64,000 nucleotides of DNA from Amoebophrya sp. A120 (GCA_905178155.1 CAJINV010000002.1:7923650-7987649); one strand, 5' to 3'; shown: positions 8,016-58,126, counted from the stretch's first letter. Notes: generated by a model from the letters alone, not told the origin. Translations and numbers: made by a program.

Positions 8016-11000
8016 CTACACTAGGTACTTGATATCAAAAAACCGGTCAGGCAGCGTCGTCAAGAAGCGCTCGCATGGATGTGTCTTCGGATAAAGCGCG
8101 CCGAAACCGTATAGCGTCTTGGTTTGCTGCAACAGCGAATCCCGGGCCTCCTGTCGGGTACGCAGCAGATCCGGGTCCACGGGCTCGGGGCCGTTGTTCT
8201 CTATCGCTCTCTCCGGCTCCGGGGCCTTTTGTGGTTTATAGATTGTGCGGCATCGAATGAAATTGATAAGAAATTCTGCTGTTTTTTGTTTTGTTCCGCC
8301 CCAAACGGCGCGACAAAAAGCAGTGCACAGGCAGCAGTCCAAAGGCAGCAAAGTGCTCTTCGTGAGAACTGGAAGAGCGAGAGCCACGCAGTTATTCCGC
8401 TGCCTGTGCCTTGCCTCTAACGAAGTACAGAAGCGAAAGATCAGGACACTCGTACTGCTTCGAAGAGAACCAAAGGCAGCTCATCATGGTTTTTTCTCTG
8501 GCTCTGCGAGCGAAGCGCGTGCAAAAATTTTACATGGTCGTGCCCAAAGAAACTACAACTCCAGACCTTTATTGGCAAGCTCAGCGAGGCGGAGGGGATG
8601 GAGCTAGTTGAGGAGGAAGTCGTCTGCGAAGTTTTGCTGTCGGTCCGCAGGTTCGGGGCCGCAGCCGCCCTGTCCGCCAGCACCGTCTGTATTCCACGAC
8701 GGTTCTCAGTGCGCTTGTTCGACCGCGAGCGCGACCTCCTCCGCCGGTCTCGACTTCGCGTTCGGCGCGACGCCTCTCGCTCACGACCTTCCCGTCCTGA
8801 CCCGTGATTCCCTCCACGTTCTTCCTTCTCGCCCCGCTTTATTCTTGCTGTCCTCTCATGGTCCTCTTTCTCAACACCTTTGTTGCTGCGACCTCCGTGG
8901 TGGTCAACATCTTCACCTCGTCTACCTTTGTCTTTATGTTCATCTCTGCCACCGCGCCCGCCCGATTTTTCTTTGTCCGCCAGCGCTCGATCGCGCCGCT
9001 CGCGCTCGGCCTTCCTCGCGTCCCGGTCTTGCTTCCGCGCCGCAATTATGGATTGTAAAAATGTCTGGGTCTGGAAACTTGTGATGCTGGGTGGCGTATC
9101 ATGAAGAGGCCACAAGTGCTGGCTCAGCATGACAAGCTTTCGAGCTTGTAGGTGTTGCCTATTCTGCATGACAAACGCTTAGAATGACTAACCCAATGAA
9201 AGCGGTAGCGAGTAACTAATTGCACAAGTAGGCAGCCTAACTGAGAATAGAAGAAATAAGACAGAATGGCAAAAATGGAGGGCATGAAGATAGCGGAGGA
9301 GGAGACGCTACTGCCACGAGAAGAAGAGGAGTCGAGTGGGACAAGAAATGAAGAAAGAAGAGGGTGGCAGGAAAACAGTAACAAAAGAGACAAAAAAGAA
9401 GAAAAAGAAGGAGACGGACTGGGAGGAGATAGAGAAGAAAAAAGCGAAGACGAGAGAGAAATAACAGAAGAGGAGGGAGCAGACGCGCAGGAAGGAGACG
9501 AACTAGATGAGAAAAAAGAAAGAGAAGACGGAAGCGAAGAAATGAGGCGGGAGCGCCACCTTTTCTGGAACATAAATGGAGTAAAGCGGCGAAATGCGCT
9601 ACGCCTGCTAAAAGCAAACACAAAGATAACGCCAAGGCTCACAGGAGCCAGCTGCGCAGAGCTCAAAGTAGCAGCGCTAACAGACGAGCAAGCAGCTTTC
9701 CAACACGTTGAAGAGGAACGGAAGGCGTTGGGGATTCCAGACACGAGACCGGCAATGTACTTTGCGGCGGCGACAAATATGAAAAAAGTGGCCGCGGAAC
9801 TCAATGCGGGGGCAGTGGGGGTGATATACATAGAAGAGCCAAAGAGGCTGCCTGGCAGTATATATAGTGCGGAGATACTTCGGAAAGATATGGGAGGGAC
9901 ATTCCTGCGGAAAGACATAACCAATAAAGAGGACGCTTTGCTATGGATGGTAGCAGCGCAAGACGAAAGAGGAATGCTGGTCGTGGTCTTCTACCGCAGG
10001 CCAGCGAAGGACGCACCCATAAAAGACAGCGAAGAGGCGATGTTTATTCGCAAGCAAATGGCAGAAATGACCGCAAAGCTCGAAAAAATGATAGAAGAAT
10101 GCGGAATGGCAATAATGACGGGAGACCTGAACTGTCAGTACGCAATAGAAGAAAGAGGAAAGATAAAATTTGAAAGAGAAAAAACAGGGGTGCAGAAGAT
10201 ATATTTCGAGGAGGTGATAAAGCCATTAGAAAACATGCTGAACAAGCATGCGGAGACACTGCCAACAGGAGGGCCAACATGCTACCGCAGCCAAGAAAAC
10301 CCAACTGCGATTGACTTCATGGCAATAGCAGGGAAAAAGGGCAGGGTGGTGGCGAAAGTTTGCGAGAGGGTGCAGATACCGCAAGAGGTAAAGCAGGACG
10401 AGGATCAGAATCAGGAACAAGATGAAAATCAGGAGGAGGAGTCGGACCACGTAGCTCTACTTGCAGACGTGGTATGGATACCGCCCCCGAAGTGCATAGG
10501 GGAAGTGCAAAAAGAAAAGCAAGCGAAAGAACAGAAGCGATGGGCCTTCAACGCACGGCACTCACTCATGGCGCCGACGGTGGAAAGCGCAAAAGGGAGA
10601 ATAGAGATAATCAGGGGGAAGAGAAAATTCCAAAAAGCCAACCCGGTGAGACAGGTGGCGAAGTGGCCGCGGAAATCGATAACACTAGAAAGGCTTCAGG
10701 AGACGATGGAAAAAGCAGGGACAATACCAACAGAGCAGAGAACAATGCTGGGAGTACAGAAATGGCTCATGGACAAACTGAACGAGGCGGGAGTCCTCAA
10801 GGTGCAAAAAGTAGAAAAGGGAGGGAAGTTTAAGGCTCAATGGCAGAAGCAAAATAGAGAGAAGCGGAAAGAAGAGAAAAACATAAAGCAAGAAGAAGGA
10901 GAGCAAGGCGAAGAGGAAAAAGAAAAGGCGGAGGCAGCCGAAAAGGAGTGGGCGCAGTCATTTCTGCAAATGCCAAAAAAGGGGCAAAAGACGGAAAAGG

Positions 11001-14000
11001 AAATATACGAAACAGCAAGAAAAGTAAAAGAAGCAATATGTGGAGTAGGAAGGGGAATGCCAATGGGAGAGGCAAAAGAAGTGACAGTAGGCGGAATACT
11101 AGTGAAAGGGGTAGAGGCAGCGACGGAGAGGATCGCTAGCAGCCACCTGCTAAAGTGTGAACTCACGAGGAAGGAGAACGGAAAGAAGCACACCTATGAC
11201 GCAAAGGAGCTAGCGAAAGCACTGGGACAGCTAACGCAAGCATGCAGGGAGGTTAAAAGCTTACGCTTTACCGGCCCACAGTTAAAGGAACACGTAAAAA
11301 GACTCAATCCTGAGGCCGCCGGTATGGACGGCCTCAGGATGGGAATTTATAAAGCACTCACGCCGGAGCAATATGAGATCCTGGCGGAGGTGTTTAATAG
11401 ATTCTTAAAAGAGGTAGAGGAATTTGAAATGAAGCAAAACGCAAAGAAAAACCAGCCGGCGTTGCTGGAAGAGCACCTGAACGCGGTGCAGGTAGAGCTG
11501 TTGAAAAAGCAGACAGCAGCAACGACGGCAATAGAAAAAATTCGGACGGTGATACAGGGGACAGCGATCACGCGAGTGCTGCTCAGTGTGGTAGTCTTCG
11601 AAATGGTGCGCGTAGCCGACAAAAATGATGCGTTTACAAGGTGTGGATCGGCGTCAAAGCCAGGGGCTAGCTGCCAAGCGACAGCGCTACAGGTATTACA
11701 GACATGCCACGAAGGAGGTGGGGTAGAGAAACAGAAGGAAGCACAAGAAAAAAAGGGAGAGGAAAGAAGTAAGCAGGAAACAATTGTGTTCGGGCTAGAT
11801 GCATCCAATTACTTCAACAACATTGGAATACCGAGAGCAGTAGAAGCATACAGAACAGCAAAGCTGCACCCGTGCTTTATAAAGCTGATAATAGTAACAG
11901 CGTGGACAAAAGACCTATGGATAAGAAATGGGGATTGCTACGGCCACGTAGTCAGACATAGAGAGCTCATCCAGGGCGCAGTGGAGACGATGCTCGGGGG
12001 GACTCTGATGTTTCTCCCGGGCGTAGAAATTGTAGCAGAATTTTTGGAAGAAGTTTTTGATGAAGAAGGGAGAACAAATAGAGAAAGACTGCAGAAAGCA
12101 GAGGCTAAGCTGCGCACGAGAGTAGCAAGGCTATACAAGGGAGGGGACATAGACACAAGCTTTCGGGACTACGACCACCGGACGGAGGTGGACGAAATAT
12201 ACCAAAAGGAGGCCGGCCCACCAGTAACGGGATATAGGAGAGGAGAAAAAGTCACAACAGGGCAAGGGAAAGAGAAGAAGGGCGAAAAAGCAAGAAAGAC
12301 GGAATTTCGATACTACATGGGAAAGCTCCCGCATGACAACAACAGAAAATGGACCCTAGCGGTTCAATATGTGGACGACGGGACCATTGTCCTGAAGTTT
12401 TTTGTAGAAGATATAGAAGTGGTAGCGGCAGCATTGAGAGCAACAAGCTGGGCGTACCAAAAAATCTATGAAACAGAAGGACAATTCCTGGCGCCCCTGA
12501 AGTGTGAACTTGCCACGTCGCTGAAAGACCCTGTGAGAATCAGCATTCTGCGGCAGGCTTTCCAGCCTTTTGGAATAATGTTCGAAGAGAAGGACTTCCT
12601 GAAGATCTTAGGAATAAGGATAGTGCCAACGAACAAGGAGGGGCAGCGCAAGGCTCTCAGGAGCCAAGTTCAGCAGAGCATAGGAATAGGGCAGCACCTG
12701 GCTTACCAGCTAATGTCAAGACGGAAAAAGCTAGAGGGGGAGGAGTTGGCGTGGATAATCCAAGTGCTCTTTGTGTCGTCGATGATATACTTTCTACCGG
12801 TGACGCAGCTCTATTTCGATCGGTCGGAGCCGGTGCCGGCCGCGGCCGTGCTAAACCGGGGCTATTTTTTTGCCCGTCCAAGAATTTTCAAAGAAAAATA
12901 ACCCCCGAAAAGCGCCAACTCCCCACCCCCCCTTTTGGCCCGATTCCACGGGCCCCCCTTGCTAATTTGCTTGCTAATTTCGTTGCTATTTCGCTTGCTA
13001 ATTTGCTTGCTAATTTCCTTGCTAATTCGCGTGCTAATTCCTTTGCTAATTCGCGTGCTAATTCCCCTTGCTAATTAGCGTTCTATGCCCCCCTCCCGAA
13101 TTTCCCCAAAAAATCTGCCCCNNNNNNNNNNNNNNNNNNNNNNNNNNNNNNNNNNNNNNNNNNNNNNNNNNNNNNNNNNNNNNNNNNNNNNNNNNNNNNN
13201 NNNNNNNNNNNNNNNNNNNNNNNNNNNNNNNNNNNNNNNNNNNNNNNNNNNNNNNNNNNNNNNNNNNNNNNNNNNNNNNNNNNNNNNNNNNNNNNNNNNN
13301 NNNNNNNNNNNNNNNNNNNNNNNNNNNNNNNNNNNNNNNNNNNNNNNNNNNNNNNNNNNNNNNNNNNNNNNNNNNNNNNNNNNNNNNNNNNNNNNNNNNN
13401 NNNNNNNNNNNNNNNNNNNNNNNNNNNNNNNNNNNNNNNNNNNNNNNNNNNNNNNATTTCGACATGCAGGACTGGGCGACAATGCTAGGAGAAATATCGC
13501 TAACAATAGCAGAAACGATAGGGATGACAGAGGAAACGGTGGAAGAACTGATGAGAAAGACGAACACAAATGCAGAAACCTTCTACCGCGTAGTTTTCGG
13601 GGCGAATATGCTAGGAATTACAGACCCTTTCACGCTGGGGCTGAAAACACTAAGAGCAACAGCCCAAGCAAACTATTTGACAGACCCGGGGGGTTTCATC
13701 CAAATGGCAACAATGCCACTCAAAGTAGTGGGGGAATCGAAGGCAGGAATAGCAAGAGCTGTGGAAAGAAAAATAATGAAGAGAAAAGAAGCTGACATAG
13801 CACTACTGCAAGCACTCAGAGACGGAGCATCGGTGAGGTTGTCTGCGGGGAGCGACCTGCGGGGGGTAGGAATAGTAAGAAAAAATAACAAAGCAAAACC
13901 GCAGATGGTACAAAGCCAGCACGTGTACAGATGCGACAGGAGTCTGCTTGCGGACAAAATAAGACAAGGGGGGAAAGGAAAGAAAGGGCAGAGTGACTAC

Positions 14001-17000
14001 ATGACGAAAATATGGGTAAAACACACGGAAAAAGAAGAAGCTACGATGGTAACAGTAGAGGAATGGAAGGGGAAAGAAGAACACATGGCAACAATTGAAA
14101 CGAGGCAGGACCACCTAAAGACAGAAGTTAGGACAGAAGAGCGAAAATTCGTAGCGTATTGCAATAACGCTATAAGAGCAATAGAGATGGTGAAGAAACA
14201 GCAACACGAAGGGAGTGGAGGAGTGTGCGTGTGCTTGCTGGATTACGACGAGATGAAAGAGAAAACGCGGGGGCTTCTGCGGAAAGAGCAAGGGATAGCG
14301 TTAGAGCTGCAGGAGGAAATAGAAAAAGCAGAGGAACAGATTCCGGGCTTATCAATAGTCAGGCGCTGGGGGAAGCAGAACGCGCCAAAAACCCTCGCAA
14401 AAAGAGAAGCACAAAGGGGTTATACAGAAGTGATACCCTTAAAGGTGGCAAACGTGTCGAAGCATGATGATGAATATACTGAATGGGTTCAGTACGATTT
14501 CGGCGAAAAAAATGTACCGACAAAACCGATCTGGGAATGGCCGGAAATGTCAAAAATAGAAAGACAAGTGTACATATACCGGAAGATTATAGGAGACGAA
14601 AAGAAAGACGGGCAGAAAGCGGAGGAGGGAGGTGGTGACGGCGAGGACGACAGAAGGAAAGGCAGCACAGGAGAGAGGAAGGGGAAGGGGGAAAGTAGCA
14701 GGGCGAAGGGGAAAGCTCGCTGCGGAAAAGGCCCCAAAGAGAACACTGCGACGACAGACACGAGCAGGGAGATAGTCAGCGGGTCACTAGCAGAAACAAT
14801 CAGAAAAATGGTAGAAGGGGAAAAGATAAGAGCACAGAAAGAAGGAAACGAAATGTTGCAGAGGGCGCTGGACATAATAGGAAGAGCCACGGACCTACTA
14901 GAAACAGCCGAAGACGTTCCATTAGAATCGCGCGCGACGTCGAGCAGCAGCAACAGGAGGGACGTGCCGGAAATAACAGAAGAGCGAAAGGAATCAAAAG
15001 AAGAAGAAGAGAACGAAATAGAAGAAGATGTGTACTTCTCCCCGGCGCAGGAGTACCAGGGAAGCCGCTCAGGATACGTGTACAAACTCGGGCGCTTTGG
15101 CCTGGGGTATTATAAGGATCAAGGACCGGAGGAGGCAACGCGGGAGATGTTCCAAAAAATTACGATAGGGGGGCCAGGAGGAAAACTGCCTAAGAGGGAA
15201 ATCCCGAAAGAACAGAAAACAGCGAAAAAAGAAGTCACTGAAGACGCGACGCGACAAGAGAAGAACACGCAGCAAGTGCGCCAAGTGGCAGAGGAGGAGG
15301 AGGAGCTAGAAATGACATCACGAGAAGCAGAAGAACCAGGCGGAGAGGGGAGATCAGGAAGTCTGAGAAAGAAAATCGTCAAAGACATAAGCGAAACAGT
15401 GAGGGACAAAGAAGATAAAAAGGAAGAGGAAAGATTTCCAACACTGGAGGAGCTGAACGAGAGGGACCGGAAGCGGGACCGCGAAGAGGCAGCAGAACGG
15501 GAGGAGGAGCGCAAACGGCAGGAAGAAAGGAGATCTATGAAAAGACTGAAGTATGATAATTCATTACAGGAAGAGTTAGCCCAGATGTTTAGGAACAAGC
15601 ACTGAGAAACGATGATGAAAGAGATGTTGAAAATAATGAAAAGAAAGAAAGAGAACGAAACAGAAGGGCGAAAAATGGGGGAGCAGTGTTCTGGGTGTTG
15701 GCGGAGGGAAGAGGAAGCAGAGGAAAGAAAAAGAAAGAAAAAGTGGCTCCCTTGGTCGTCTCAGCTAGCCTGCAAGGGCTCCGCTTCCGCCAGCTGAAAG
15801 GCACGGCGCTGCTAATCATCTCGTCCTCGCCAGCCAATAGGCACGGCGCTGCTATCCCGTCGTCGTCAACGCGTCCCTTTTACTAGTAGGTGGGAACAGG
15901 GTTGCCAATTTAAAGACTGCGCTAAGGCAGCACCCCCCTTCCCCAAGGGGTCCCCCCGGGGCGGGCGCGGTGGCGGCTCTGCTAGCGCGGAGCTTCAATG
16001 TCCGATTCTACCTATGCGCATAAAAAGGGTGCGCGGATGCAGGTCGGTAAAGTGCTTGAAAGGGGCATGCTTTGGGGTTGCCCGTCATCGTGATAGGGTC
16101 AACGTGTGTGACCAATAGACCCCCTGTATATCTAGCGCGCAACCGACCACAGAAGCTGTAGTGCTCAATGTTTGTAAGAATAACCCAACAAGGCAACACT
16201 GGAGCTCCACCTTGCTCGAGGGCTTGGATGGTAAATCAGGTCAGCCACATCTAGCGCCCACTGGCCGTACTCATGCGTAAGCAATCGCAAGCGGTTCGGC
16301 GGATGCGGTCGGGTGGTACCTGTAGGACGTGGAACGGGTGTCCACCTAGGGGTATTGGCAGAGGCTAAATCTGTTCTAACGCCACGGTATTGGCAGAGGC
16401 TAAATCTGTTCTAACGCCACGGCATTGGCAGCGGCTAAATCTGTTCTAACGCCACCCTGACAGGAGTCAAATGTCAAAACGATACGATACGATACATGAC
16501 AGCAAAATGGGGCTCTTGGGTAACGTGCGTGACAGATTTAAGAGTCATGCCAGACTAGCATGTCAGATGTCGCATTCTTCCAGACCCAGACATATTTGCA
16601 TTTGATAGCAATGACGCGGTCGCGCCGCGATTTCGACGTCTGATGCCGACCCCGGTCTACTCTGGTGTTGTCTCGTTCCCCACCAGCGGCCCGTCGGGGG
16701 CTCCGAGACTTCTTCTTTCGCTCGTCTTTATCCCGGTCCCCGGCGCGCCGTGGCGTGGGCAGGCTATCAAAAGGAGAAATCCCCCCTCCCCATATCGAAA
16801 TGGAAATCCGTGATGCAGGATTTGGGTACACAAATCGGATTTGTCTTGCAGTAAGGCATCGCAGCCAGATCCTTGGCCTAGGTAGGGGCGTATAGGTCTA
16901 GTTGCTTAGCATTGCAAACGGGTGCCCCCTAGCCGCAACAGCATGCCAAATCGCGTCCATAATGGTGCGGAAGCCTCTGCGCCTGTCTTCTTGCAAGACA

Positions 17001-39000: not shown

Positions 39001-40688
39001 GTCAGTGGTGGTAAAGTGATTGTGAGTTATTGCATCTACTCTACGGCATAGCTCCCCCCTACTCTACGGCATAGCACACCAGAGTTGTCATGCAGATTTG
39101 CATGCCAAAAAGGTTTCCCATGCGGAGCCGCATGAGAAGCGTTTTCTAATCGTGTTTGAGAATTTGCGATGCTCTAATCAGCATGATATGCTAGATCTGT
39201 GATGCTGCTTGAGGTAGCTAAACAGGATTACACTACGGGGCCAAATTTGTCATGCGAAACAACCAAAGCTGGATAATTTGTCTAGCAGATTTCCCATCTT
39301 GACTCTGGTGTGGGGATGTTTTTACACAGGATATTCTGCCGCTGGAGGCAGACCCGCTTCAGCGCCTCCATCATGTAGATAGTGTTGTTGCAGTACATCG
39401 TGTATCAAATGCAAAAATGTCTGGGTCTGGAATGTTGCCGGGTTTGTCATGCATACTTTGCATGACCCAGGATGTCTGTAATGCACGACCTAGCATCACA
39501 GATTTCTAGATGGCTTCCTGATGCCTACTCCGCATGACAAATGCCCTCCCCGCGTAGCACAAACTAGACTCCTCTTGCTGGTCATGCAATACAGATTTTT
39601 TTAGAGTCCAAAGTTCGCATCACAAGTTCCGACCTTCCAGACCCAGACATTTTTACAGTTGATATCGTGAACTCCGGGTCGTTGGGGTCCACCAGCTCCG
39701 GCCGGGAGAGTCGACTGTCCGACCAAACTACCGGATAGCCGTCGTGAGCGAAGCCGAGGAACCGCGTGCTGCCGTTGTTCATCAGCAGCCGTTCCGGGGG
39801 CTGCAACGCGGTGGGAAGAAAGTTGTTCTTCGCGTTCCTTTTCCGCGCCTCGCGCCACCGGACGGTGGCGCGGAAGCTCCGCACGGCCGCAGGCACGTCG
39901 TTCTCCGTGGACGCGAGAAACCGGAGAACTTCCTCCCGGGTGTATCAAAAGGAAAAATCCTCCCTCCCCATATCGAAAACGAAACTTGTGATGCTGGATT
40001 TCCGTATACAAATCTGATTTGTATTGCGGTAGAGGACTGCACGCAGATCGTAAGCCTAAAGAGGGGCCTCTTGGTGTAGGGGCCTAGCATGGCAAACGTC
40101 TGCCCTATAGGCCTTGCAGCATTACCAATCGCCTGCATATCGTGGGGGAGTCTCTGAGTTTGCCCTCTTGCAAGAGAGACAGGATTTGTGGTCACAAATC
40201 AGCATCACAACTTTTTAGAAACATACCTTTTCAGTATGGGGAGGGGGGATTTTTCCTTACGATAGGGTGTAGATGGTTTGCTGCTCGTCCGCGAACAGCA
40301 GCTGCTCCCAGTCCTCAAGGGGCACGCCTGGCGGGGGTTCTTGCTGCTCCTTGCCTGCTTCTATGTTATTGTTGGGTGCTGCCGTTTTTGAAGCCACTTG
40401 ATCTTGATGACGCGCTATCGGAGCTGCATCATCTTCTTCGGCGTTGATGCGTCGGAGCTCAAGCAAAAACGCCTGGTAAACTGAATCTTCCCTGGCATCG
40501 GGCCGCTGCGCCTCCAGCTGGTGATTCACCCGAGCAGGTGCTGCTGCTTTCTTTTCTCGTCTTTCTTTTCCCCCTGCTCCAGGTGGTCTAGACCGGGGGT
40601 GGTGCCAGGCCTTTTGGCTTTGTTCCAACTCGTCCTGGACATCGAGAGGTCGTCGGGCAGTTCTACCATCCATGATCTGGGTCGACAC
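36039..40688 (-). CDS. CRAL-TRIO (Sec14-like) lipid-binding protein with C-terminal hydrophobic segments; start uncertain
   Basis: EVLRFLASTENDVPAAVRSFRATVRWR (CRAL-TRIO_N), LMDFSGW, NHYPG..IINAPPLF..AWSIF, ILPFEYGG. Joined across three introners. Confidence 0.88.
37743..39333. mobile_element. Introner family C carrying a 1.29-kb insert, TSD TTCTG
   Basis: C TIRs at both ends. 1591 - 1292 - 19 = 280 bp, the family C size. Join LQRQ|KLPTF. Confidence 0.95.
37783..39074 (-). mobile_element. Non-autonomous internal-deletion derivative of retrotransposon 2
   Basis: 37783-38008 matches 47004-47236, and 38009-39060 matches 55987-57034. 19-bp TSD CACACCAGAGTTGTCATGC at 37764-37782 and 39075-39093. 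Confidence 0.93.
39403..39664. mobile_element. Introner family B (262 bp), TSD TCGTG
   Basis: B TIRs. Join PEFT|MYCN. Confidence 0.95.
39943..40264. mobile_element. Introner family A (322 bp), TSD GGGTG
   Basis: A TIRs. Join TIYT|REEVLRFL. Confidence 0.95.
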
Positions 40689-46500: not shown

Positions 46501-49500
46501 AGCACCGCGGCGGCTTCGTTGTGGACACAGAGCCGCAGCTGCTCCGTGGAAGTAGTCTGCGGGTACCCGAAGTCCAGCATTTCGTCGAGGAGTTCGTAGA
46601 GGAGCACAAAGTTCTTCCGTATGGACTCTTCGGTCAGCGTGCCGCAGTAGTCTTTGAACACCTTGCAGATATGCATTGCAAATATGTCTGGGTCTGGAAG
46701 ATTGCACCTTGTCATGCTACATCTGGATCGTGGAAAAATTTGTGTTGCGTGATTACCAAAAAAGGCCCACTTTTGAACAAGTTTACAGGCAGTTTCTCAT
46801 GCAGGAAAGGCATGATAGAGATCTCACAGAACCTGTCATGCTAGGCCGTGCATGCCAGACCGGGTGGGTCATGAAAAAACTGCATGACAAACCTAGCAAT
46901 CTTCATCCAGACCCAGACATTTTTGCATTTGATAGCAGATCTTCGTGAGCAACTCCAGCAACATATCCTGAGGAAAAACGTACCCACCCCAGAGTTGTCA
47001 TGCTAAACAAAATGCGACACACTTTGCCCCCCCATTGTACCATGGCCGCAGATGGCTTGGCACGCAGGGCGGGTGGGTCAGGCGGACACCGAAGTGCCAT
47101 CACCATCATCTCCCGGCCACTATATCCCAACTCTGATCTCGCCAACCAACCATACTGCGCCAACAACCATACTGTGCCAACTTGCCAACTGAACAACGCC
47201 TCGCTTTTTTTTTTTTTTTGCCAACAATTCCTTACTGTTCAATTCAATTCATGGAGCGGCCCCGTGCTGGAACACTTCTGGTGGTGGACGTGAGCACGAG
47301 ATTTGCGGCTTCGCGCCGCGACAACCAAATGGGGGTCCCTTCCCCCCCCCTCCGTTTTCAAAAATCCCGTTTGTGCGTGCATGATGCAAAGGGCCAACAT
47401 CGGTGGTCGACATGGATGAACTCGAGATCAAGCTCGAAACGAAAGCACCGGCCACAAAAAGAATAAGCGAAAATCTTCGGCGAGGATCGGAAGACCGCAA
47501 TTTGTGATGCCAATGGCTGCTAAAACCCGAACGGCGGGGGGGTATCTACCGCGCCGAGCGCGCGGATTCGTTTTCCTTTACGTGTCGAGCCGGTAGCAGC
47601 GGCACACGCCACATCTCTTCCATCTTGCAGCGTCCGGACGGATGTGTTGGGGGCATAGCAGTGCGGGGGGATACTAACTTACTGCGGCTTAGCAGGGCCG
47701 GATTTGTCATGCAAAATTTGTTTTCGGATAGTGCTGAACGAACTTTTTTCCTCTTTCTAGAGCTAACAAGTCACCGCGTCACGCCTAGGTGACACCCGCA
47801 AGCTATTTAGTAGCTGCGCCGCCTGAATGGTTTTTTAAGTACTGACCCGGTAGCAGCGGGCGAAAGATCTTTTTTAGGAAACTACACCGGCAGCTTCGTG
47901 CAGCTACCGCAGATAGCGAGCAGGGCGCCGCTAGTAAAACCAATAAACTCTAAATAATTTGTCATGCAAAATTGGAATTTGAATCTTGTAGTACAGCAGC
48001 TTCGGGACCATCCGGGAGAGAAAACTCCGCTTTGCCGCAGCTGCAGGTGCCTTCGTCGCGGTCGAGGATGTCTTGCATGGCATCGGCTCACGCTGAAGTC
48101 GAAGTTGCAGATCGGCGCGCGGGGAGGACGGGCTTGAGACTGGATTTCTACGTTTCGCCCAGCTGGCTCGAAGGGACCCGGCAGAAAAGCAAGATGGGCT
48201 TCACGAGGCCGAAGTACAGCTATGTAGTGCGGTCCGACCGGTGATCTGGATGAAAATGCGCTACACCGCACCGGCCGATCCGGATAAAAAAAAAAGTGGC
48301 GCAACAGCATCGCACTTTCACGCTATCTGGATGAAGATGTGCTGCCAAACCGCAGCCCGGTAGAAGGACAACATGGCGAGCTCCGAAACGCGGCCCGGCT
48401 CCGGTCCAGGCAAGTAAGATTCCGGCTGTTCCCAGGGCGGCGGCGTGGGCCCGATACGCCGCGGGGTCTGGTAGCGACGGAAACCGGCGCCAGGTGGGGA
48501 TTCCTGTTCTGCGAAGGCGTAAACAGGGTCAGCAGCTGGTTTGGCGGTGTTGGTGCCCTGTACACCGGTTTTCTGGCCACTAGGCGCGATTCGGGCGGAA
48601 CAGACCGAAGCTGTTCTTTTTTCCTTTATCTCCGTATTCACCTGCTACCACGGTGAGTTTGTCGCAAGTGAAGCAGCTGCTGCTTCGTGGTCACCTCCAC
48701 GTCGTCAGGATCAGGTCGTGGCGGAGTATTATGGATGGAAAAACCGAACGGAGAAATGCAATATTAAAACTGTACGCTATCGAGATGCTGGGGACACCGC
48801 CGGCAAGTCAGCTCGGCGGCATTGCTTTTATGGTGCTATGATGTGACTTCCATGTTCTGAATGCTTCGAAACTGAGACCCGTGCCCAGAACTGAAACCCT
48901 GAACCGAAACCCGAACCGCAAACCCGGGCCCGACACCCGGCCGCAACCGAGACGGGTGTATACCGTCGGAAGTGCAGCTGTGTTTTTGCACCGACCGGAG
49001 GAGAGCGACTAGGACTAACCCTGACGAAGGCGTACAGCCGGGGGAAGAAAGTGAGTCGAGGAGGGGTGGGGAAGCGAGGAGGGGCGACAAGAGTCCAGGC
49101 AGCCCAGGACGGAAGATCAGCAACAGAGACGATTGCTCCCCCGGAGCGCCAGCTGATGACCCGGGAATAGAGGCAGGTTGGTGAAGACCAACAAGAAAAA
49201 GAGATATAACCCGGGCGGAGTAGGGCGACCTTATGAGAGGCCTGTAGCAAAATATATTTTGTTGCGCGATTGCCGAAAGTCCACTTGATCCCTAGTAGAA
49301 AATGCCCGCGGGCGGGGCAAACTCACAACTGTGGCGGTCTCATACCGTCCTAAGTGCTATCATGTTTTGAACTTATCAAAAAAACCCAGCCGTGCTGAAA
49401 CCCCGAGAAGCCGAAAGCTTATGGCACGCACGTTACCCGGAACGGAAATCCCCCGGAACCGAAGCCCCCGGAAGGGCGGGAAGAGGACACAGTGGTTCTG

Positions 49501-52500
49501 GCAGGCAGCTAAGAACGGGGGAAACTAACGCTCCACCGCAGCGCAAGCGGAAGACCTGGGAATACAATAACCAACAGGTCAGTGAAGACTAACAAATACT
49601 AGTAGAAAGTCCCGCCAATAGATTCAATACGATACTCGTGACGGGGTATATGAGTACATCAAATACAACATGGAATCTGCATGACAAATTGATTTTTATC
49701 CGTTTGGTTTGTGTGTAATCCCCGCCTTTTTCGGCACTGGACATTCTGCGCCGAATATCCGCTTCCACTACAGATGTGGGCTAGAGCCGGTGGCGCGGTG
49801 CCCTTTCGCGGGTTGGTCGAAGAAGTTGCAAAAGGGGCGAAGACAGGTCGACGAGCCGTGTGCTTCCTGAGCAGGTTCAGCTTGCCCGGGCCGCCATAGT
49901 ATGTTCACCGCCTGGCGGGGGATTCCTGGCATCGCTGCTGGTGTGCGGTTCTAGGTGTTTTTATACAGTGGGAAAGCTGACGGACGCACGTTAGTAGCAG
50001 TTTGTCATGCTTAAAGTATTGCAAATGCAGGAACACGCAGTGGAAGTGCTGAGAGCGAAGTATTTCTCGACGGGCATTTGTTGCCGAAATAAGATTTATT
50101 TTAGACGCTATGGGTAAGCGATGGCATCGCAGAGATCATGCACACAGTGTGGGCTTAGTCATTAGCACTGGCGAAATTTAAAATGTCTATTTTACGCGCG
50201 CCGAACTAGATTAGAACTACACACGAGCGACGAACTTTATTACAGGACCAAGGAGAAAACTTCTTGCTTGTTTTTTCTTTTACTTTTTGTTTGGTGCGCA
50301 TGACAAACTGCTACCGTGGTAGTGTCCGTTCTTAACTTCAAGGAGAGTATGCTGCTACTCCGTCACCGGTAGCTGGGTGCTGTGCCTCGGATGGTCGCAT
50401 CCGCGTTGTCGCCAGTCCGGCTGTCTACTTGGTCACGTCCGTCGTGCTGCGGTGGCATAGTAGCAGGTAGTCGGGGGTGTGAGATTAGAGATACACGCAG
50501 AACGACACACGAAACGCAACGACACTTCGAGGGATATATATTTTCCTCTCGATATCTCCTCCCGCTGCACCGGTCACACCACACAGTCCTCGTTGGGTGC
50601 CACTCTAGCGCTAATTTCTACTCTTTCTATCTCAACTACTACTCCCTGCTCGACTTTACTTCTGTTACAACAATGCTGATTTTGAGATTCTGCATGGTTG
50701 CTGCCTTTTAACCAAGAGAGCGTAGCTGGTCCTCTACATTTTCTTCTTTTTTGCTGTATCTACCAACTTTGTGTACATGAAAGAGAACCAAGTAACCGTC
50801 TAGCTCCAACAGTATCACATACATCTTGCGCAACTTTAATTTCCTCTTAGCATAATAATGACGCTGGCAGTTCATATACTTCTCAGCACGGCATTCGGAC
50901 CTTTAGCTTGTAACTTAGTTCGTACTTGTTGGCTTTTCGTTTGCATATTCGGATATTCTATTTGCATAATTTTTTGGTATTATCATATACTAGAAGGCTG
51001 AGCAGGTGAGTAGTGGTTTACAGATAGACTTTTTCATTCCTCGCCATGTGGATCCTGGGTCTCCGCGAACGCTGGCATGTCCTCCGGGTCCTGAGTGGCA
51101 GGAGGCGGTCGAGATGAGGACGCAGCAGTCGCGCCGGTCTTCCTCGCCTTCCGTACCTGGGGGGACTTTGCAGCTGCTGTTCTCTTCCCCGATGCTGCTG
51201 CCGCAGCAGTGGTCTTTACCGGATATTTCTTCGCCGGTACTGTTGTTGCAGCAGTGGTCTTTGCCGCAGTTTTTCTCCCCGGTGCTGCTGTCGCCACAAC
51301 AGTCTTGCTCGCCGTAGGATTTTCCTTTTCAGAATTGCTGCTTGCAGGCGGCAGGCCCGGTTCCTGCGTGTGGGGGGGGATTGGAGGTTGCGGCACCAGC
51401 GTCCCTGTTGGTTCGGTCTGCGGGCCCGCCCCAGTCCCTGTCGGTGGCTTTGGTGGTACCAATTTTGCCATGTTGGTGCGGATAATTTTCGCCAGCTTGT
51501 ACTTGTGCATTTTTTGCGTCAGCTCCTGCAGGCAAATAGGCAGCTTGAAGCTCCGCCGGGGCCAGTCCGCATACTGGTCGCGGCCGGACAACTCCAGGAC
51601 CGAGGTCGTCGCCACGTGGGTGTTGTGCGCCCCGATGCCCTTGGTTTTGTTGATGTCCAAGTCAAACCGCTTCGCGGAATGCAGCCAGATCCTGTCTTTC
51701 CACTCCATCGTCGCAAGCCAAAACTCACGGAAGACACCCGAGCCCCGGACTTTGTCGTTGATTCCTAGGCCTTCGACGATCACGTGGGGCCGGAAACCCG
51801 AGATACTCGCCGCGGTGGACATGCGCCGCAGCGCCTCGGTAGCGGTCTGCAAGTACCTGAACCGCGCCGCGGTTTGTGGGCAGGGTATTCCCACATGGTC
51901 CGTGGACTTGATCGCCATCCTGGATGTTGAGTCGGTGTTCAACACGATCGCGCTGTTGGTCGATCGGCATGCCGTGATGACATACGCGCCTGGGATGTAT
52001 CGCGGGCCCACGCCACCGGGAGCAACATGGGGGAAGGGGCACACCTGCTGCAGTTCTGTTGTCAGCGTGTCGCACACCCCGGCGGGGCTGGTAGTGATAA
52101 ACCCCGCTCCTGCTGCGTTGTGCTGGATCGTTAGTTCGAGACTTTTATCGGCCAGATTGGTGGCGTTGATCCAAGTACGGGCCGACTCGTCAACAAATCC
52201 AGCGGGCCCGTTCGTGGGCACCCTTCTCGTAATTTCTGGCAGAAACTCGCTTTGCCCGGTAAGTGCAGTCCATTTCCCGGCCGCCTGCCGCAGTGCCTTG
52301 GTGGCCTGTAGCCAGGGGTCCACCGCGTTCACGAGATCGGTAGAAAAAGCCAGCTTGTACAGGGCCTCCGCGTCAAGCTTATTCAGCGCCAGCAGGTCCA
52401 CGATGTGCTGGTTGCTGAATCCGAGAAAATTCATGATGGAAGTTGCGACTTGGTGCAAGTACTTCTTCCATTTTTCCGTCGACCAAAGCTTCACAGCAAG

Positions 52501-55500
52501 GGGCAGCAGGTGAGCGACGGAGGAGGTGTAGGCCCAAATCACGAGCAACCGGAGCATCGTCCCCGAGAGCGAGACCATGCCGGAGTACACCTGCTCGACC
52601 ATGGATCGCGCGGCCCCAAGTCTGCCTGCCAACTGCTTCCACAAAACATCCTCCGGCAGTTGGTTGATTGCGAAGAGACAGCCGAGGAAGAGCGTGGAGC
52701 TCTTGATTTGGGGCACGATCCCCCACGGGTTCAACGCTTTCACGATCGTGGAGCGGAGCTGTTGCAATTTCGCCGCATTGGCCTCGGCGTTGGGGCTGTT
52801 TTGCTGGAACGGGTTGCCCGGCATAGCTTCGTACTTGTCTTTGCCCGCCAGGTACACGCCCATTTTGGAAAATTTCCGCTCCTCGAATTTTGTCAGGGTT
52901 TCCATAATCAGCTGGATGTTGCCGTTGTCGACGTCGTCTTTGTGTGCCCGGAACCCCTGCGCGCGGTCGTCCACGCAACTTCCCAGAACGGCAGGCGGTT
53001 TGTTCTCGTACGGGTGCACCCGGCCCCCGGATGCTGGCGGGACTGCTTCTGCTGTGAAAATGTTGGTCTGCTTCACTCGGCGGGGGGGCTGTTGGTGGAT
53101 ATGGTGGCACGGATGGACATCCTTTTCTAGGGTGTAGGGCTCCCAAGAGTAGGGCGAAGTAGTATCCTTGTCCATTTCTGCCAGCAATGCTGCAGCTGCT
53201 GTCTCGATTCTACTTCGACATAACCTCCGCGTTGCCGGATCGTAACAACTCACCAAGAACCAGTGCAGCAGCTTCATGTACCTCATGGACAAAATGCATC
53301 CCGCAATCATGACTTCGGTGCTGCCCTGGATGCATTCCCAGAATGATGGAATTAAGGCGTATTTTCGTCCGTTCCGGATGATTATCCGTTTGTTGAGGGT
53401 GGCCGCAAACCAAAGCAGGATGCCGGGGTGGCATTTTGTCTGCCGGAGGCACTGCAACATCGCGACGCCGGTGATGGTATTGTAGTAGTTGCAGTAGTCC
53501 GTGGATAGGTAGATCCAGAACTCATCGGGGCCTAAGCTAAGTAAGCAGTCCAATAGTTTGAGAACCAAGATGCACAGAGCCACTGTGGGTCTTCCTCCGT
53601 GTCCGTAAATTCCCATGACGTTCGTATCCTCCGCAGCCTGCATTATCCGGCGGCCGAAAACTCCGCTGATGGTCTTCAAAGCGTACCCAGTCCGTGTCAC
53701 GCAGCGGACCTTGCGGATTTCTTCTACCTTTCCCCCTTTTCCCAGTAGCTCGATCTGCTGCGTTCTCATTGGCTCCGGTATGGAGGTTGAGAGAAACCGT
53801 GGGTCGGATGAAGTCACTTTCTGCACCAGGTTGTTGCTCGCGGTCGTAAAGTTTTTCTTTAGTTCCCGCGGGGCGGACTGCAACAACTTCGTCCTGGCGC
53901 CCGACACTCCCTGCGCTTGAGAATTTGCGTTCGCCATCAAGTCTTCAACCTCCGGGGTGGAAATCTGAAGCGGCTTGCACTTTCGGGCGGCGCTTGCAAG
54001 TTCTTCTTTCAGTCGGATCCAGTTCTCCTGGGGCATCTGCGTGGGGAGTCCGCAGTCCTTTCGCATTATTGATGATTTCAAGATATGCGATTTCCCAACT
54101 TCGACCGCGACTGCTTGTGCTCCTGAGATCACACGGGCGCCGGATTTTACGGAATCGATCTGCGGAAGCGGTGCGCCTTTTTTCACCCCGGTCACCTTCG
54201 TCCGAACAGCCGCTTGCATCTCGAATAAGCCATCCATAAACACACTACGCCCCGGCGTAGCTTCAGCTGGGAGGATGGCGCCGCCGGCATCTCGCACCCA
54301 GCTAATGAACCTCTGGATCTTGCCCGAGACATCGGCGCGGGATAGGTACGCGGCGTTGCCATTGTTGGCCGGACCCTGCTCCGCTGGCGGCTTTTCTTCC
54401 GGCGGTGGTCTCGGCTGGTTTTGGGTGCCGCCCTGTTTCGGAGGTTTGCGCGATACTTGCTGCGCCGTTTTTGCAAGATTCGCTGCGGTGGCTGCCTCTG
54501 CAGACCAAGTCTCAAAAGCGAATGGGCAGTCCGTGGGTGGTGGTGTTGTCTGCGCGTAGTCTACCTGGGCAGCAGCCAAGGCGGCCGAGGTACAAGCCGG
54601 GTCGTCGCGTCGCATCAAACATCGCGTCTTGATGCCCGAGGGAAGTGCGTCTGCGAGACTCCGCACGGCAGAAATGGGGGCTGTAAGTGCCGCGCCATAT
54701 GTGTACGGCATCTGGTGCTTTTCGTATGACGCATAAATATTTTCCTGCGTGATAGTGCTGTTTATCACGGCTGCCGGGTCTCCGGTCGGGTCGGGGTTGT
54801 GCGCAGTCGGCAAGCTATTTTCTTGCGTGCTGGGCTCCTCATCGTAAAAACCGGAGAAGACCAGCGCAACATGGTCGCAATTGTACATGCGGACGTACTC
54901 CGCGGTCTCCGAGCCATCCAAAATCTCGCTTTGCCCCTCAGTGGCGTCGGCCGGGTTGCGGTAAATCAACGCGCGCGCAACATGCACCTGGTTGAAGCCT
55001 CGCGTCGCAATGTGGTCGATCGTACTGCCCTCCGTCTTGTGAAAGCACGTCTTGCCCCCAACGTCCTGAAACTCGTAGTGCAGCTTGACCCAGTTCAACA
55101 GCGGCACCAGGACATGGTCCCGAACGTCGGCCGAGTGGTTTTCCCACGACTCAAAGTCCGAGTTCCAGTCTCCACACACGTACCCGCGGGCCGTGGAATT
55201 TGTCATGCCCGTGAGCTTGGTGAGCATATTCTGCATCTGCCTATCGAGCGAAACCTTCTCCGATGCGGAAAGGGGCTTCGATCGTGGGGGTGCGTACAGC
55301 ATAATCTTCAGCGTGCCGGCGATGATCGTTCCGGTCAGAAACAGAAGAAAGTCCTCCGGGTCGTCGGAAAACCACGATACCAGCTGGTCGCCTTGCTCCT
55401 CCGGGTTCACCTTGGATAGTACCCAACTACCGGAATTGTGGTCACCAAGCTCCGGAAGAAGATCGGGGTGGGCGAAATGTTCAAAGTGGGCAACGTGGCC

Positions 55501-58126
55501 ACTTTTGCAGTTTGTCATGCTGCTGTTGGTAGTTTCGTTTACCACCGCCCGTAGCTGGTCATCGCGAAACTGCGCCCGGTCTCCTTGTGGGACCCCGGCT
55601 GGGATTTTCGTTTCGCAAAAGAGCTCCGCGGTGGCCTTCTCCGCTTCCTGCAGCTGCTGGGCGAGTTTCGACCGGTTGTAGTCAAAAGAATTCCAGATAA
55701 TGGCTTTCTCGCACCGCCCATATTCTTGTGCCTCTGCATCCTCGTCGGGGATTTCGTAATACCGGACTTCCTCCTCCTGCAGGTGCGGGTCGTGGAAGTC
55801 GTCGTCTTCAGCTAGTGGGTCCTCGAGAACCAACTCCTCGTCAGCGTCGACAAGAGTCATGCGCGCTAATTTTGAAATGGGCGCCCCGTTCCCCGTGCAT
55901 CAACTTTTCTTTTTTACGACATCCTGCAGCACTTATCACGTCGCGGCGTGAGCAAGCGGAGATAAACAACAAAAAAAACAAAATTACTGATTCTCGCAAA
56001 CTTCCAACTCGCAACCACTATAACGGGGATGTACAGCCAGCCCCACAACTACAAGAGAAAGCTGCAGCCTGCGGCAAACCAGTTGTTACTGTCTGGACGA
56101 ATGCATTCACTGGAGGCACTAAGCGACAAGCGCCAGCCTAAAGTGATGTTTAAACATCCAAATTAAAGGTAAGAGGTGCGAGATTTAATGCTGATCCACC
56201 TGACCGCCGGATTTGGCGATCATGATCGGCGATTGCTTTACACATGACCGAAAGTGCGGGGTACAGATACACGATTGGCGAGGCTGCTCAAGTAGAGCAC
56301 GTTTCTGCACGCGGACCGCTGCCCATGCGGGCGCAACACAGAAGCGCAAAACGTCGGCGCCAGGTTCATTCTCGATTCCACGGCGGGAATATTCCCGCGT
56401 CGTGGGCAACACCATCTCCCCCAGCGCTGCCAAGCCTTGAGCTCGCATCTATTGTGCGCCCCTACATCGCATCTATTGTGCTGGGGAACAAGGCTCGATT
56501 GAGCTTGTTGCTACTGGCTTGGGCGAGCTGGGGGGCATCCACGCTCGCGAAGCCTCGACCTGGTGTCCGTTTGCCGAAGCCTACCCGAGCTGCTTAATCC
56601 ACCGGCGGCATGGTGGACTTTACCCTTTCCAGAACTCCTGCCCCGGTCTGATTTCGTATTCCGGTTCTGCCGCGAACATGGAGAAGTTGCTGCCCATGCC
56701 CGTCAGGCTAAGCGAGGACCTTGCTCCTGCGCAGGATGGTGCGTGGACGACTGCTGCAGGATTCAGGCGCCGTGTCCGGGCGGGGAGGAGGTCATTTTTA
56801 GGAGGGGTACTCGGCAGCACGGGGCGCTGGTTCTGAGATCTCGGCTAGTGTAAAGGGGGGCCGGAGATCTAGTAGGCTACTGTAAAGGGGGGCACAGCGG
56901 ACCCGCCACGCTCGGGTGTTTATCTACTTCTTTCGAAACTCCTCTTCAGGGAGTCGGGGGAGATACCGACGTGGTGTCAGTGGTGGTAAATGATTGTGAG
57001 TTATCGTATCTACTCTACGGCATAGCTCCCCCTATTCTAGATTTGTTGGATCTCAGGCAACAAGGCAAAGCCTTGAGCCAAAAAAACCCCAGAGTTGTCA
57101 TGCAAATCTGCATGCCAAAAAAGTTTCTCATGCGGAGCCCCATGAGAAGCATTTTCTAGTCGTGTTTTTGAGTTTGTGATGCTAGAATCAGCATGATGTG
57201 CTAGATCTGTGATGCTGCTGAACTAGCGAAACAGGATTATTCTAGGAGGGCAAACCTGTCATGCGAAACAGCGAAAGCTGGTTGATTTGTCTAGCAGATT
57301 TCCCATCTTGACTCTGGTGTGGGGACGTTTTTACTCAGGATACAACAATGTGGCGTTACTATTGGTGTTAAATGACGTGGTTGCGACGAAGTAAAGTTAT
57401 CATATGGAAAACAAGCACCGCCGGAAGAATGCGTTCGTTCCTCGAAGAACTACATACATGAAGTGTTCTATAATTGCTCAATCTCCGACAGCAAAAGCAG
57501 AGAGGCGCTGTATTTACGACCTTTTTCTACAAACATCACGAAAAACCAATAGGGACATTTGTGGTACGTCAGCCGTGCTAGCGCCGGTACGATAGCTACA
57601 CCGGCATTCATCAATTTTCAGTTCAATGTACTTATTTCATGCAAGTAGATAAAACACTGTGCCACGCTTTGTCTTCCCTTCTCAGACTTGCATTTTTTTG
57701 TTTTTCAATGTGATATCAATCCGTTTTTCTTCAGAAAATAGTAGTTATCGCACAGAAAAAAGCAGGCATGCATATTCGTAATGCAAAAAAAAATAGCAGA
57801 AAAATTACATTTAGTGGTTTAAGTCTAGAAGTCTGTGTCTATTTTTGCATTACAAATATGCCCTGCCTGCTTTTTTCTGTGGGATAGTAGTTGATCCCGT
57901 GCTGGTGAAAGACCGGGGGACAGTCCTCCCCGTGCTGGAACAAAGTCACCTTGCGGAAAAACATCTCAGCTGTGCCCTTGACCACGTCCCCGCGGAAATC
58001 CCGGGTCAAAATGGTGTCTCCCCGCGGCGACAGAACGTAAAACTGGCTCATACATTGGAAGACGAGCGGCTTGGTGGCCCGCAGGTGCGGTGGCGGAGCC
58101 GAGGAGCTGCTCGAGGTGGTCGCCAT
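43524..58126 (-). CDS. AP4M1: AP-4 adaptor complex mu subunit, multi-exon
   Basis: [122 protein letters not shown]. Confidence 0.92.
44154..44476. mobile_element. Introner family A (323 bp), TSD TCGCG
   Basis: A TIRs. Join NLVA|SISATE. Confidence 0.95.
46670..46934. mobile_element. Introner family B (265 bp), TSD GCAGA
   Basis: B TIRs. Join TKIC|KVFKDY. Confidence 0.95.
47004..57085 (-). mobile_element. Non-LTR retrotransposon 2, apparently full length (10.08 kb)
   Basis: 18-bp TSD ACCCCAGAGTTGTCATGC at 46986-47003 and 57086-57103. About 1.2-kb 5' UTR, one 1608-aa ORF, about 4-kb 3' non-coding region, no poly(A). Confidence 0.92.
51034..55860 (-). CDS. APE endonuclease-reverse transcriptase polyprotein (1608 aa, uninterrupted)
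   Basis: EEP motifs IIWNS, FCETK, CGDWNS, STIDHI, CDHVAL. RT motifs [21 protein letters not shown] (52966-52977), LFLG. Ala/Lys/Thr-rich tail. Confidence 0.9.
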   Translation of the reverse strand: MTLVDADEELVLEDPLAEDDDFHDPHLQEEEVRYYEIPDEDAEAQEYGRCEKAIIWNSFDYNRSKLAQQLQEAEKATAELFCETKIPAGVPQGDRAQFRDDQLRAVVNETTNSSMTNCKSGHVAHFEHFAHPDLLPELGDHNSGSWVLSKVNPEEQGDQLVSWFSDDPEDFLLFLTGTIIAGTLKIMLYAPPRSKPLSASEKVSLDRQMQNMLTKLTGMTNSTARGYVCGDWNSDFESWENHSADVRDHVLVPLLNWVKLHYEFQDVGGKTCFHKTEGSTIDHIATRGFNQVHVARALIYRNPADATEGQSEILDGSETAEYVRMYNCDHVALVFSGFYDEEPSTQENSLPTAHNPDPTGDPAAVINSTITQENIYASYEKHQMPYTYGAALTAPISAVRSLADALPSGIKTRCLMRRDDPACTSAALAAAQVDYAQTTPPPTDCPFAFETWSAEAATAANLAKTAQQVSRKPPKQGGTQNQPRPPPEEKPPAEQGPANNGNAAYLSRADVSGKIQRFISWVRDAGGAILPAEATPGRSVFMDGLFEMQAAVRTKVTGVKKGAPLPQIDSVKSGARVISGAQAVAVEVGKSHILKSSIMRKDCGLPTQMPQENWIRLKEELASAARKCKPLQISTPEVEDLMANANSQAQGVSGARTKLLQSAPRELKKNFTTASNNLVQKVTSSDPRFLSTSIPEPMRTQQIELLGKGGKVEEIRKVRCVTRTGYALKTISGVFGRRIMQAAEDTNVMGIYGHGGRPTVALCILVLKLLDCLLSLGPDEFWIYLSTDYCNYYNTITGVAMLQCLRQTKCHPGILLWFAATLNKRIIIRNGRKYALIPSFWECIQGSTEVMIAGCILSMRYMKLLHWFLVSCYDPATRRLCRSRIETAAAALLAEMDKDTTSPYSWEPYTLEKDVHPCHHIHQQPPRRVKQTNIFTAEAVPPASGGRVHPYENKPPAVLGSCVDDRAQGFRAHKDDVDNGNIQLIMETLTKFEERKFSKMGVYLAGKDKYEAMPGNPFQQNSPNAEANAAKLQQLRSTIVKALNPWGIVPQIKSSTLFLGCLFAINQLPEDVLWKQLAGRLGAARSMVEQVYSGMVSLSGTMLRLLVIWAYTSSVAHLLPLAVKLWSTEKWKKYLHQVATSIMNFLGFSNQHIVDLLALNKLDAEALYKLAFSTDLVNAVDPWLQATKALRQAAGKWTALTGQSEFLPEITRRVPTNGPAGFVDESARTWINATNLADKSLELTIQHNAAGAGFITTSPAGVCDTLTTELQQVCPFPHVAPGGVGPRYIPGAYVITACRSTNSAIVLNTDSTSRMAIKSTDHVGIPCPQTAARFRYLQTATEALRRMSTAASISGFRPHVIVEGLGINDKVRGSGVFREFWLATMEWKDRIWLHSAKRFDLDINKTKGIGAHNTHVATTSVLELSGRDQYADWPRRSFKLPICLQELTQKMHKYKLAKIIRTNMAKLVPPKPPTGTGAGPQTEPTGTLVPQPPIPPHTQEPGLPPASSNSEKENPTASKTVVATAAPGRKTAAKTTAATTVPAKKYPVKTTAAAAASGKRTAAAKSPQVRKARKTGATAASSSRPPPATQDPEDMPAFAETQDPHGEE

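Follow-up and report, generated by a model that had tools for sequence, protein, structure and literature searches.

A divergent LINE of Amoebophrya sp. A120 with insertions at a central site of intron-forming transposons

A LINE within an introner

The genome of Amoebophrya sp. A120, a parasitic dinoflagellate, carries introners, transposons that form introns in genes. In a stretch of 64,000 nucleotides of this genome (GCA_905178155.1, CAJINV010000002.1:7923650-7987649; hereafter the window, with positions counted from its first letter), one such introner is split by a long interspersed nuclear element (LINE), here termed element 1. Judged from this copy and its relatives elsewhere in the genome, element 1 is very probably a recently active, site-specific LINE that homes to the central region of introners with terminal inverted repeats (TIRs), and it belongs to a highly divergent clade found only in Amoebophrya.

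Element 1 occupies 9174-16494 on the plus strand. Its flanks at 9047-9173 and 16495-16607, both on the plus strand, are the halves of a single introner of family B, as the preliminary description of the window had proposed, and uninterrupted family-B copies match the 5' half with 94-99% identity. This half contains the left TIR (TGTAAAAATGTCTGGGTCTGGAA, from 9054) and is closed at 9166-9173 by motif 1, GCATGACA. The 3' half starts one base into motif 2, (G)CATGACAGCAAAATGG, an offset of +1 from the start of the motif, and ends with the right-hand TIR. Between the LINE body and the 3' half lies a microsatellite tail, (CGATA)3 or CGATACGATACGATA, at 16480-16494 (plus strand); CATGACAG then begins at 16495, so that the tail abuts CATGACA just as described before. 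The copy designated L041 matches element 1 from 9175 and extends at least 922 bp past the start of the window copy on the 5' side, and the window copy is therefore a 5'-truncated LINE.

The state of the site before insertion can be read from 27 uninterrupted family-B copies (94-99% identity), which run through the insertion point with the arrangement GCATGACA-AACTGCGTTTCT-GCATGACAGCAAAATGG (the motif 2 side is also written GCATGACAGC); motif 2 is GCATGACA in 18 of the 27. The two CATGACA sequences that border the window copy are thus introner motifs 1 and 2, which lie 12 bp apart, and since intact B introners hold both, the pair is not a target-site duplication. A 7-bp duplication with a start at 9174 and a blunt insertion with a start at 9187 had been offered as the two alternatives, and the intact B consensus rules out both. 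About 10 bp of target between the motifs was lost, and the first bases of the element (9174-9178, AACGC) form a microhomology with the introner spacer at the 5' joint.

The element has one long open reading frame (ORF), which is divided by a nested insert. The first part (9266-12819, plus strand) encodes amino acids 1-1184 and two bases of the next codon, and comprises a predicted endonuclease, a linker and the fingers and palm of a putative reverse transcriptase (RT). The domain resembling apurinic/apyrimidinic endonucleases (APE) and the endonuclease/exonuclease/phosphatase (EEP) fold lies at 9554-10465 on the plus strand and bears the motifs WN, E, GDxN, D and DH; the RT core lies at 11303-12819 on the plus strand, with motif A (D845) at 11798 and the YVDD box (D1037-D1038) at 12374-12379. 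The second part (13463-15605, plus strand) supplies the third base of the split codon, amino acids 1186-1898 and the stop codon, and is in frame with the first. By frame arithmetic the two parts make a single open frame of 1899 codons including the stop, with a product of 1898 aa, and in copy L040 they are contiguous, with one codon between them (tblastn). A 3' untranslated region (UTR) follows at 15606-16479 (plus strand) and includes three 35-bp tandem repeats at 16351-16455; this repeat (GGTATTGGCAGAGGCTAAATCTGTTCTAACGCCAC) is present in fewer units in most of the copies L001-L039.

The nested insert (12820-13455, no strand assigned) resembles a miniature inverted-repeat transposable element (MITE). 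It includes an assembly gap at 13122-13455 and is flanked on both sides by ATTTCGA, at 12813-12819 and 13456-13462. It has a G+C-rich start and 12-bp tandem repeats, and the end of the gap falls exactly at the duplicated ATTTCGA. In L040, L041 and L049 the insert is missing and position 12819 is joined straight to 13463. A break within the LINE, considered as an explanation of the gap, is thereby ruled out, and because the gap-bearing stretch is the nested insert, the frame of the LINE is continuous. Inserts of this kind are characterized by G+C-rich inverted ends (TCGCACAGAGCCGCCCCCGGCG...), 12-bp repeats (TTGCTAATTTGC / TTGTCTAATTTC) and target duplications of 6-7 bp. L041 (minus strand) holds a similar insert of 614 bp at another place, equivalent to window positions 11874/11868, with inverted ends and a duplication of 6-7 bp, and two further relatives are found in L046, at 823-1091 and 1932-2200.

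Two other frames deserve mention. About 300 bp upstream of the point corresponding to the start of the window copy, L041 contains a basic, probably coiled-coil ORF of 198 aa (L041:8179-8775, minus strand), which is a possible ORF1 of the full-length element. To the left of the introner, the minus strand of the window holds 201 open codons at 8441-9046, for a low-complexity protein rich in Arg, Asp, Glu and Ser. This open frame suggests a host gene on the minus strand, to which element 1 would then be antisense.

Insertion sites across the genome

The introner that received element 1 belongs to a large superfamily. The TIR core pattern AATGTCTGGGTCTGGAA has 12330 forward and 12372 reverse matches in the genome, compared to 31 and 29 for a control, which corresponds to about 12,000 elements of ~250 bp and to ~2.7% of the genome; intact copies measure 236-254 bp when aligned. 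They are multicopy, bear TIRs and short direct repeats and are removed as introns, and they fit the published description of the introners of this strain (PMC7789003). Five TIR-type copies were counted in the window. An uninterrupted TIR introner at 39412-39666 (plus strand) shows the empty target CCGCATGACAAATGCCCTCCCC^GCGTAGCACAAACT.

Copies of element 1 were searched for in the 115.5-Mb assembly using its 3' 495 nt as the probe. The best 40 of 113 candidates were scored, 39 loci were fetched, and 38 copies including the one in the window could be evaluated, after L018 (which duplicates L017) and L027 (which is interrupted by another insert) were left out. Coordinates were mapped by BLAST with the LINE body minus the nested insert, while the junctions of L013, L019, L020, L035, L038, L043 and L044, where local alignments were trimmed or over-extended, were read by eye.

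In 36 of the 38 copies, the tail leads directly into a TIR introner's 3' half from motif 2 onwards, mostly within 2 nt. The orientation relative to the introner is the same in all 36, and the 5' flank, where available, is the matching 5' half of the same introner family. These copies comprise element 1 and a sub-lineage with (TAC)n tails, and they occupy at least four introner families. The binomial p for location in introners is 1e-40 to 1e-57, and for the position within the introner ~4e-51. Element 1 therefore has what distinguishes site-specific LINEs, namely a reproducible 3' junction at one position of a multicopy target, at a frequency far above chance. Random insertion, or insertion outside introners, of the other copies would have spoken against targeting; their distribution is non-random, with p below 1e-39.

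The 5' ends, by contrast with this constancy, fall at more than 10 different points (window equivalents 9174, 11989, 12033, 13912, 14091, 15095, 15710, 15882, 16127 and others), and the 5' junction lies between -43 and +19 relative to the 3' junction. The copies are thus independent insertions. They end in a simple-repeat tail, are truncated at the 5' end, show variable duplication or deletion of the target and have no long terminal repeats (LTRs), which are the signs of target-primed reverse transcription. Several show 98-100% identity in their 3' parts, and the ORF of the window copy is open apart from the nested insert, which suggests that element 1 was active recently. Five copies (L020, L022, L023, L028 and L036) are truncated within 13 nt of each other, at window equivalents 16165-16177, and lie in different introner families with different tails; this shared truncation might be due to microhomology between the LINE and the constant target, or the copies might represent a short derivative similar to a short interspersed nuclear element (SINE). 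L017 and L018 (G000:C152 and C153, 3698 bp each) show the same LINE-in-introner locus in opposite orientation and are probably an assembly duplicate.

The sequence that directly abuts the tail is less uniform than its position. Of the adjoining 8-mers, ~20 resemble GCGTAGCA and 9 resemble ACTTGGTCA; a further 5 are GCAT[GC]ACA (GCATSACA), and 3 are GCATGGCC-like or CCATTGCC. Exact copies of GCAT[GC]ACA that stand at -59, -20, +33 and +65 in the same introners never serve as insertion sites. Around the site, the context TGCcTattC.GCATGA.Aaa...c.T.T..^gc.T..Ca.aAA.t.G is conserved, with GCATGA.AA, 12-20 nt 5' of the junction, as the best-conserved neighbor. Because the abutting 8-mers vary and exact copies of the motif elsewhere remain unused, position and context, rather than the bare 8-mer, define the target. 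The preliminary description had regarded introner targeting as a property of the clade that is based on a motif shared by all introner families. The targeting itself is borne out by the 36 of 38 copies and by the related lineages. Its proposed basis is not, as only 5 of 36 junctions adjoin the motif and other exact copies of it lie unused in introners.

Intact introners fold as long hairpins (z = -7.7 relative to shuffled sequences, a value that also applies to the copy at 39412-39666), and the insertion site is near the middle, at ~54% of the length. Through this location both arms of the hairpin stay intact after insertion. The consequence for splicing can be followed at L023, where a LINE copy of 325 bp lies within an introner between two open frames. 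One contig of 1523 nt from run X1 covers positions 1-307, 428-567 and 1106-1690 of L023 with zero mismatches, and leaves out a 120-bp intron as well as all 538 bp of the introner and the LINE fragment within it. The introner with the short LINE copy is thus excised exactly from this RNA-like contig. In the DNA-like run X5, contigs read into the introner from both exons and no such joint occurs. When the three exon pieces are joined, one frame is open for 343 codons and the other two contain 11 and 19 stops; the direct repeat TGGAG is present at both intron ends, as described for this organism (PMC7789003). In the raw RNA runs X8 and X9, L023 is covered at the repeated TIR only.

The tails of the copies differ, being (CGATR)n, (AAC)n, (AC)n, (CGAAA)n or (TAC)n. 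The (TAC)n group (L024-L039), with an identity to element 1 of ~83% over the 3' UTR and of 71% over the 5' region, uses the same introner site; a long copy of this sub-lineage apparently lies at G000:C3:1456608-1463143. L013, L014, L019, L044 and L046 have only the last ~600 nt in common with the window element, and a different, purine-rich sequence is found upstream of 15879-15897. Since the sequences diverge beyond these ~600 nt, the 3' UTR is a module common to otherwise different elements.

Two further family-B introners differ from the consensus near the site. That of L057 (G000:C10:953150-956238) carries an insert of ~95 bp after motif 1, possibly a very short copy that stems from a different lineage of retroelements; it is flanked by a 15-bp duplication (GCATGACAAACTGCG), and this places the insertion just 5' of motif 1, not of motif 2. 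In L055 (G000:C15:1224579-1227667) the introner is without the 20 bp between motifs 1 and 2, as if its two copies of GCATGACA had recombined.

The encoded protein and a second lineage

The protein of element 1 is remote from known families. Pfam searches with both ORF parts, at E up to 10, gave nothing meaningful and no RVT_1; the 713-aa C-terminal part had no significant Pfam match, and neither phmmer nor an alignment profile found an RT or endonuclease match among the PDB sequences. Against 1.84 billion representative proteins, phmmer returned 7 relatives, all of them from Amoebophrya (the named ones from A120 and AT5.2). Within this set the expected catalytic residues are retained. The APE residues W16, E47, G201, D202, N204, D265, D309 and H310 are invariant (alignment A3), as are the RT-motif residues D845, N848, N851, G904, D1037, D1038, K1079 and G1116 (alignment A1), which fit motifs A-E; ~110 aa are inserted between RT motifs B and C.

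Structure prediction points in the same direction. The AlphaFold model of residues 560-1184 (mean predicted local distance difference test, pLDDT, 65) has human LINE-1 ORF2p as its top Foldseek match (E = 3e-8) and R2 as the next, and the weak endonuclease model (mean pLDDT 49) has only EEP folds among its leading Foldseek matches, the L1 and R1Bm endonucleases being two of them. Element 2, a second LINE of the window, and relatives match Pfam Exo_endo_phos or Exo_endo_phos_2, and a protein atlas gave RVT_1 clusters at 0.95. The N-terminal EEP domain with its catalytic residues is that of an APE-type LINE, whereas the arrangement of R2-type elements, a C-terminal restriction-like endonuclease with zinc-finger or Myb DNA-binding domains at the N-terminus, was not found. 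An RT of the LINE type (motifs A-E, YxDD) is indicated by the invariant residues and the predicted fold, but not by the Pfam and PDB sequence searches. As these were blank, the enzymes are assigned from motifs and from models whose confidence is modest. On this basis, element 1 is classified as an APE-type LINE of an isolated clade, with sequence relatives in Amoebophrya only. Its RT is too divergent for Pfam, and the clade is therefore probably overlooked by annotation pipelines for transposable elements (TEs).

Element 2 lies at 46964-57342 on the minus strand and represents a distantly related lineage. Its ORF of 1608 aa is collinear with the element 1 protein over ~1160 aa at 21% identity (E = 4e-24), in agreement with the distant similarity of the two RT proteins noted previously. 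The BLAST identity of element 2 ends at 47011, before its 3' junction, where TTGTTTA abuts GCATGACAACTCTGGGG (47004/47003). Element 2 and a short copy (junction below 37790) both end in TTGTTTA followed by GCATGACAACTCTGG, and the earlier observation that the 3' end of element 2 abuts the corresponding motif on its own strand is thus confirmed; element 1 junctions, unlike those of element 2, are usually without an abutting GCATGACA.

The two lineages share a collinear protein architecture and insertion at one introner site, which is comparable between them, but differ in 3' end and tail and in the introners that they use. The target of element 2 has 1199 forward and 1184 reverse matches in the genome (~2,380), compared to 0 for a control, and thus defines an introner family of ~2,400 copies, as opposed to the ~12,000 of the TIR superfamily. 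Among the scored copies it never occurs next to element 1, which suggests that each lineage keeps to introner families of its own. There is perhaps an even chance that a LINE clade restricted to Amoebophrya has radiated with each lineage on its own introner family, as obligate parasites of intron-forming transposons whose insertions are rendered harmless by the unusual, hairpin-dependent splicing of the host. With the odds similarly balanced, element 1 and its (TAC)n sister would then occupy the TIR superfamily, and element 2 the family of ~2,400 copies. Such a radiation would be the first case of a retrotransposon niche defined by splicing, and may account for the introner families that have been reported as derived from non-LTR retrotransposons. 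Two or three diverged lineages with different targets also offer a natural system for the study of how specificity changes in APE-type endonucleases or their partner domains, a question that bears on programmable RNA-templated insertion.

Choice of the site and known site-specific systems

The observations can be accommodated in a mechanism in which the protein of element 1 would recognize the center of TIR introners through the conserved context and nick the bottom strand where motif 2 begins on its 5' side. The freed 3'-OH would serve as the primer from which the LINE RNA is copied, beginning at its microsatellite tail, as in target-primed reverse transcription. Imprecise second-strand cleavage and 5' joining would then lead to the variable 5' truncation, the microhomology, and the duplications of up to ~19 bp or deletions of up to ~43 bp. 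As the mid-hairpin site leaves both TIRs whole, introner and cargo should still be removable from the pre-mRNA, and since both can be spliced out together, the site may serve as a safe haven in a compact genome. The data show the precise site, the constant orientation, the independence of the insertions, the protein folds and the exact excision of one short copy; the nick, the protein part responsible for reading the site and the neutral effect of full-length copies are what we infer.

Several points weigh against this interpretation. Splicing was seen for one short copy of 325 bp, while the window copy measures 7 kb, and run X1 was labelled RNA by guess. Two copies do not conform, as L033 is inserted at a different introner position and the location of L016 within an introner is unclear, and the scoring covered the best 40 of the 113 candidates. 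The specificity is deduced from fixed copies that have already passed through selection, and nicking and retrotransposition are reconstructed from their sequences. For the enzyme, Pfam has no RVT_1 match, the PDB profile search is blank, and the models reach a mean pLDDT of 65 and 49.

Alternative cues for the choice of the site have to be considered. The palindrome center might be recognized as a structure (an extruded hairpin, a cruciform or bent DNA) rather than by base sequence, which would agree with a site at ~54% of the length and a median of 9.5 nt from the predicted hairpin apex, with the strong folding of intact introners (z = -7.7), and with the constant position at which the abutting sequence varies by family. 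However, the apex shifts from -35 to +82 among the copies while the junction is fixed within ~2 nt of a sequence landmark, the constant orientation favors a sequence cue that is asymmetric, and the folding was computed for RNA, not for duplex DNA; recognition of structure is thus an unlikely explanation, though one to keep in mind. A still smaller chance is left for the view that the endonuclease reads GCATGACA, common to all introner families, and that both lineages cut beside it. Both junctions in the window do adjoin (G)CATGACA, motif 2 of family B is GCATGACA in most intact copies (18/27), and GCATGA.AA stands at a fixed distance upstream of every site; for element 1 this view is nevertheless largely refuted already, by the prevalence of GCGTAGCA or ACTTGGTCA at the junctions (GCAT[GC]ACA adjoins only 5/36) and by the exact motifs at -59, -20, +33 and +65 that carry no insertion.

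Two readings dispense with homing by the LINE altogether. One LINE-in-introner unit might have been copied as DNA by the introner transposase or by segmental duplication, or the LINE might take the 3' half of the introner with it through 3' transduction. The five copies with 5' ends at window equivalents 16165-16177 and the identical L017 and L018, on two contigs of 3.7 kb, would suit such a course. Yet the copies lie in different introner families with the matching 5' half upstream of each, their tails and truncation points differ, their outer flanks are unrelated, and the tail sits between the LINE and the introner 3' half. Amplification of a composite was rejected on account of the independent truncation points and is very improbable. 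Even less credit can be given to random insertion followed by selection that spared only the copies in spliceable introners, although gene density is high in this genome and the copies studied were all fixed ones. Selection could produce an enrichment in introns but not nucleotide precision within a 250-bp element; the orientation is fixed in 36/36 copies, and none was found at other positions in introners or in ordinary introns, apart from the nonconforming pair already mentioned. Survivorship as the sole explanation was rejected by the precision of the site. Homing to the central region through position and context is the reading that we retain.

Site-specific LINEs are known for ribosomal DNA (rDNA), telomeres, small-RNA genes and one Xenopus DNA transposon. 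An intron-forming transposon as the target would represent a new kind of safe haven, in which the insertion is erased at the RNA level. It would show in what way active retrotransposons, which add a second layer of parasitism on introners, can be tolerated in a parasite genome that is compact and gene-dense. A full-text literature search on introners together with site-specific retrotransposons found no related paper. Some introner families of Amoebophrya sp. A120 are, in PMC12130899, 'attributed to non-LTR retrotransposons'. The likeness lies in non-LTR sequence within spliced repeated introns of the same strain, but in that paper the elements are regarded as generators of introns, whereas element 1 is a secondary insertion in an existing TIR introner. 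The families concerned may be LINE-in-introner composites, and caution is advisable, as non-LTR sequence in repeated introns need not mean that LINEs make introns.

The precise 3' junction, variable 5' junctions, truncation and redundant target as a safe haven are shared with R1, R2 and the LINEs of rDNA, telomeres, small nuclear RNA genes and spliced-leader genes (PMC4640811 and PMC5035012). R1, TRAS and SART also have an APE-type endonuclease with sequence specificity; R2, CRE and Utopia have a restriction-like endonuclease instead of the N-terminal APE-like domain of element 1. All these LINEs, including R1Bm, TRAS/SART, Utopia and CRE/SLACS, are aimed at multicopy genes or repeats of the host and not at a mobile element that splicing removes. 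The closest known system is Tx1L in Tx1D. In Xenopus laevis, the APE-type LINEs Tx1L and Tx2L of the Tx1 clade target a specific site in the DNA transposons Tx1D and Tx2D, and insertion of the Tx1L type is cited in PMC6719617, after Christensen et al. 2000, as a safe-haven strategy of a TE within a TE. Element 1 is likewise an APE-type LINE at a fixed site in another multicopy TIR element, but its target is an intron-forming transposon in genes, from which the cargo is spliced out; it uses several diverged target families at a homologous position, and its protein has no detectable similarity to any LINE outside Amoebophrya.

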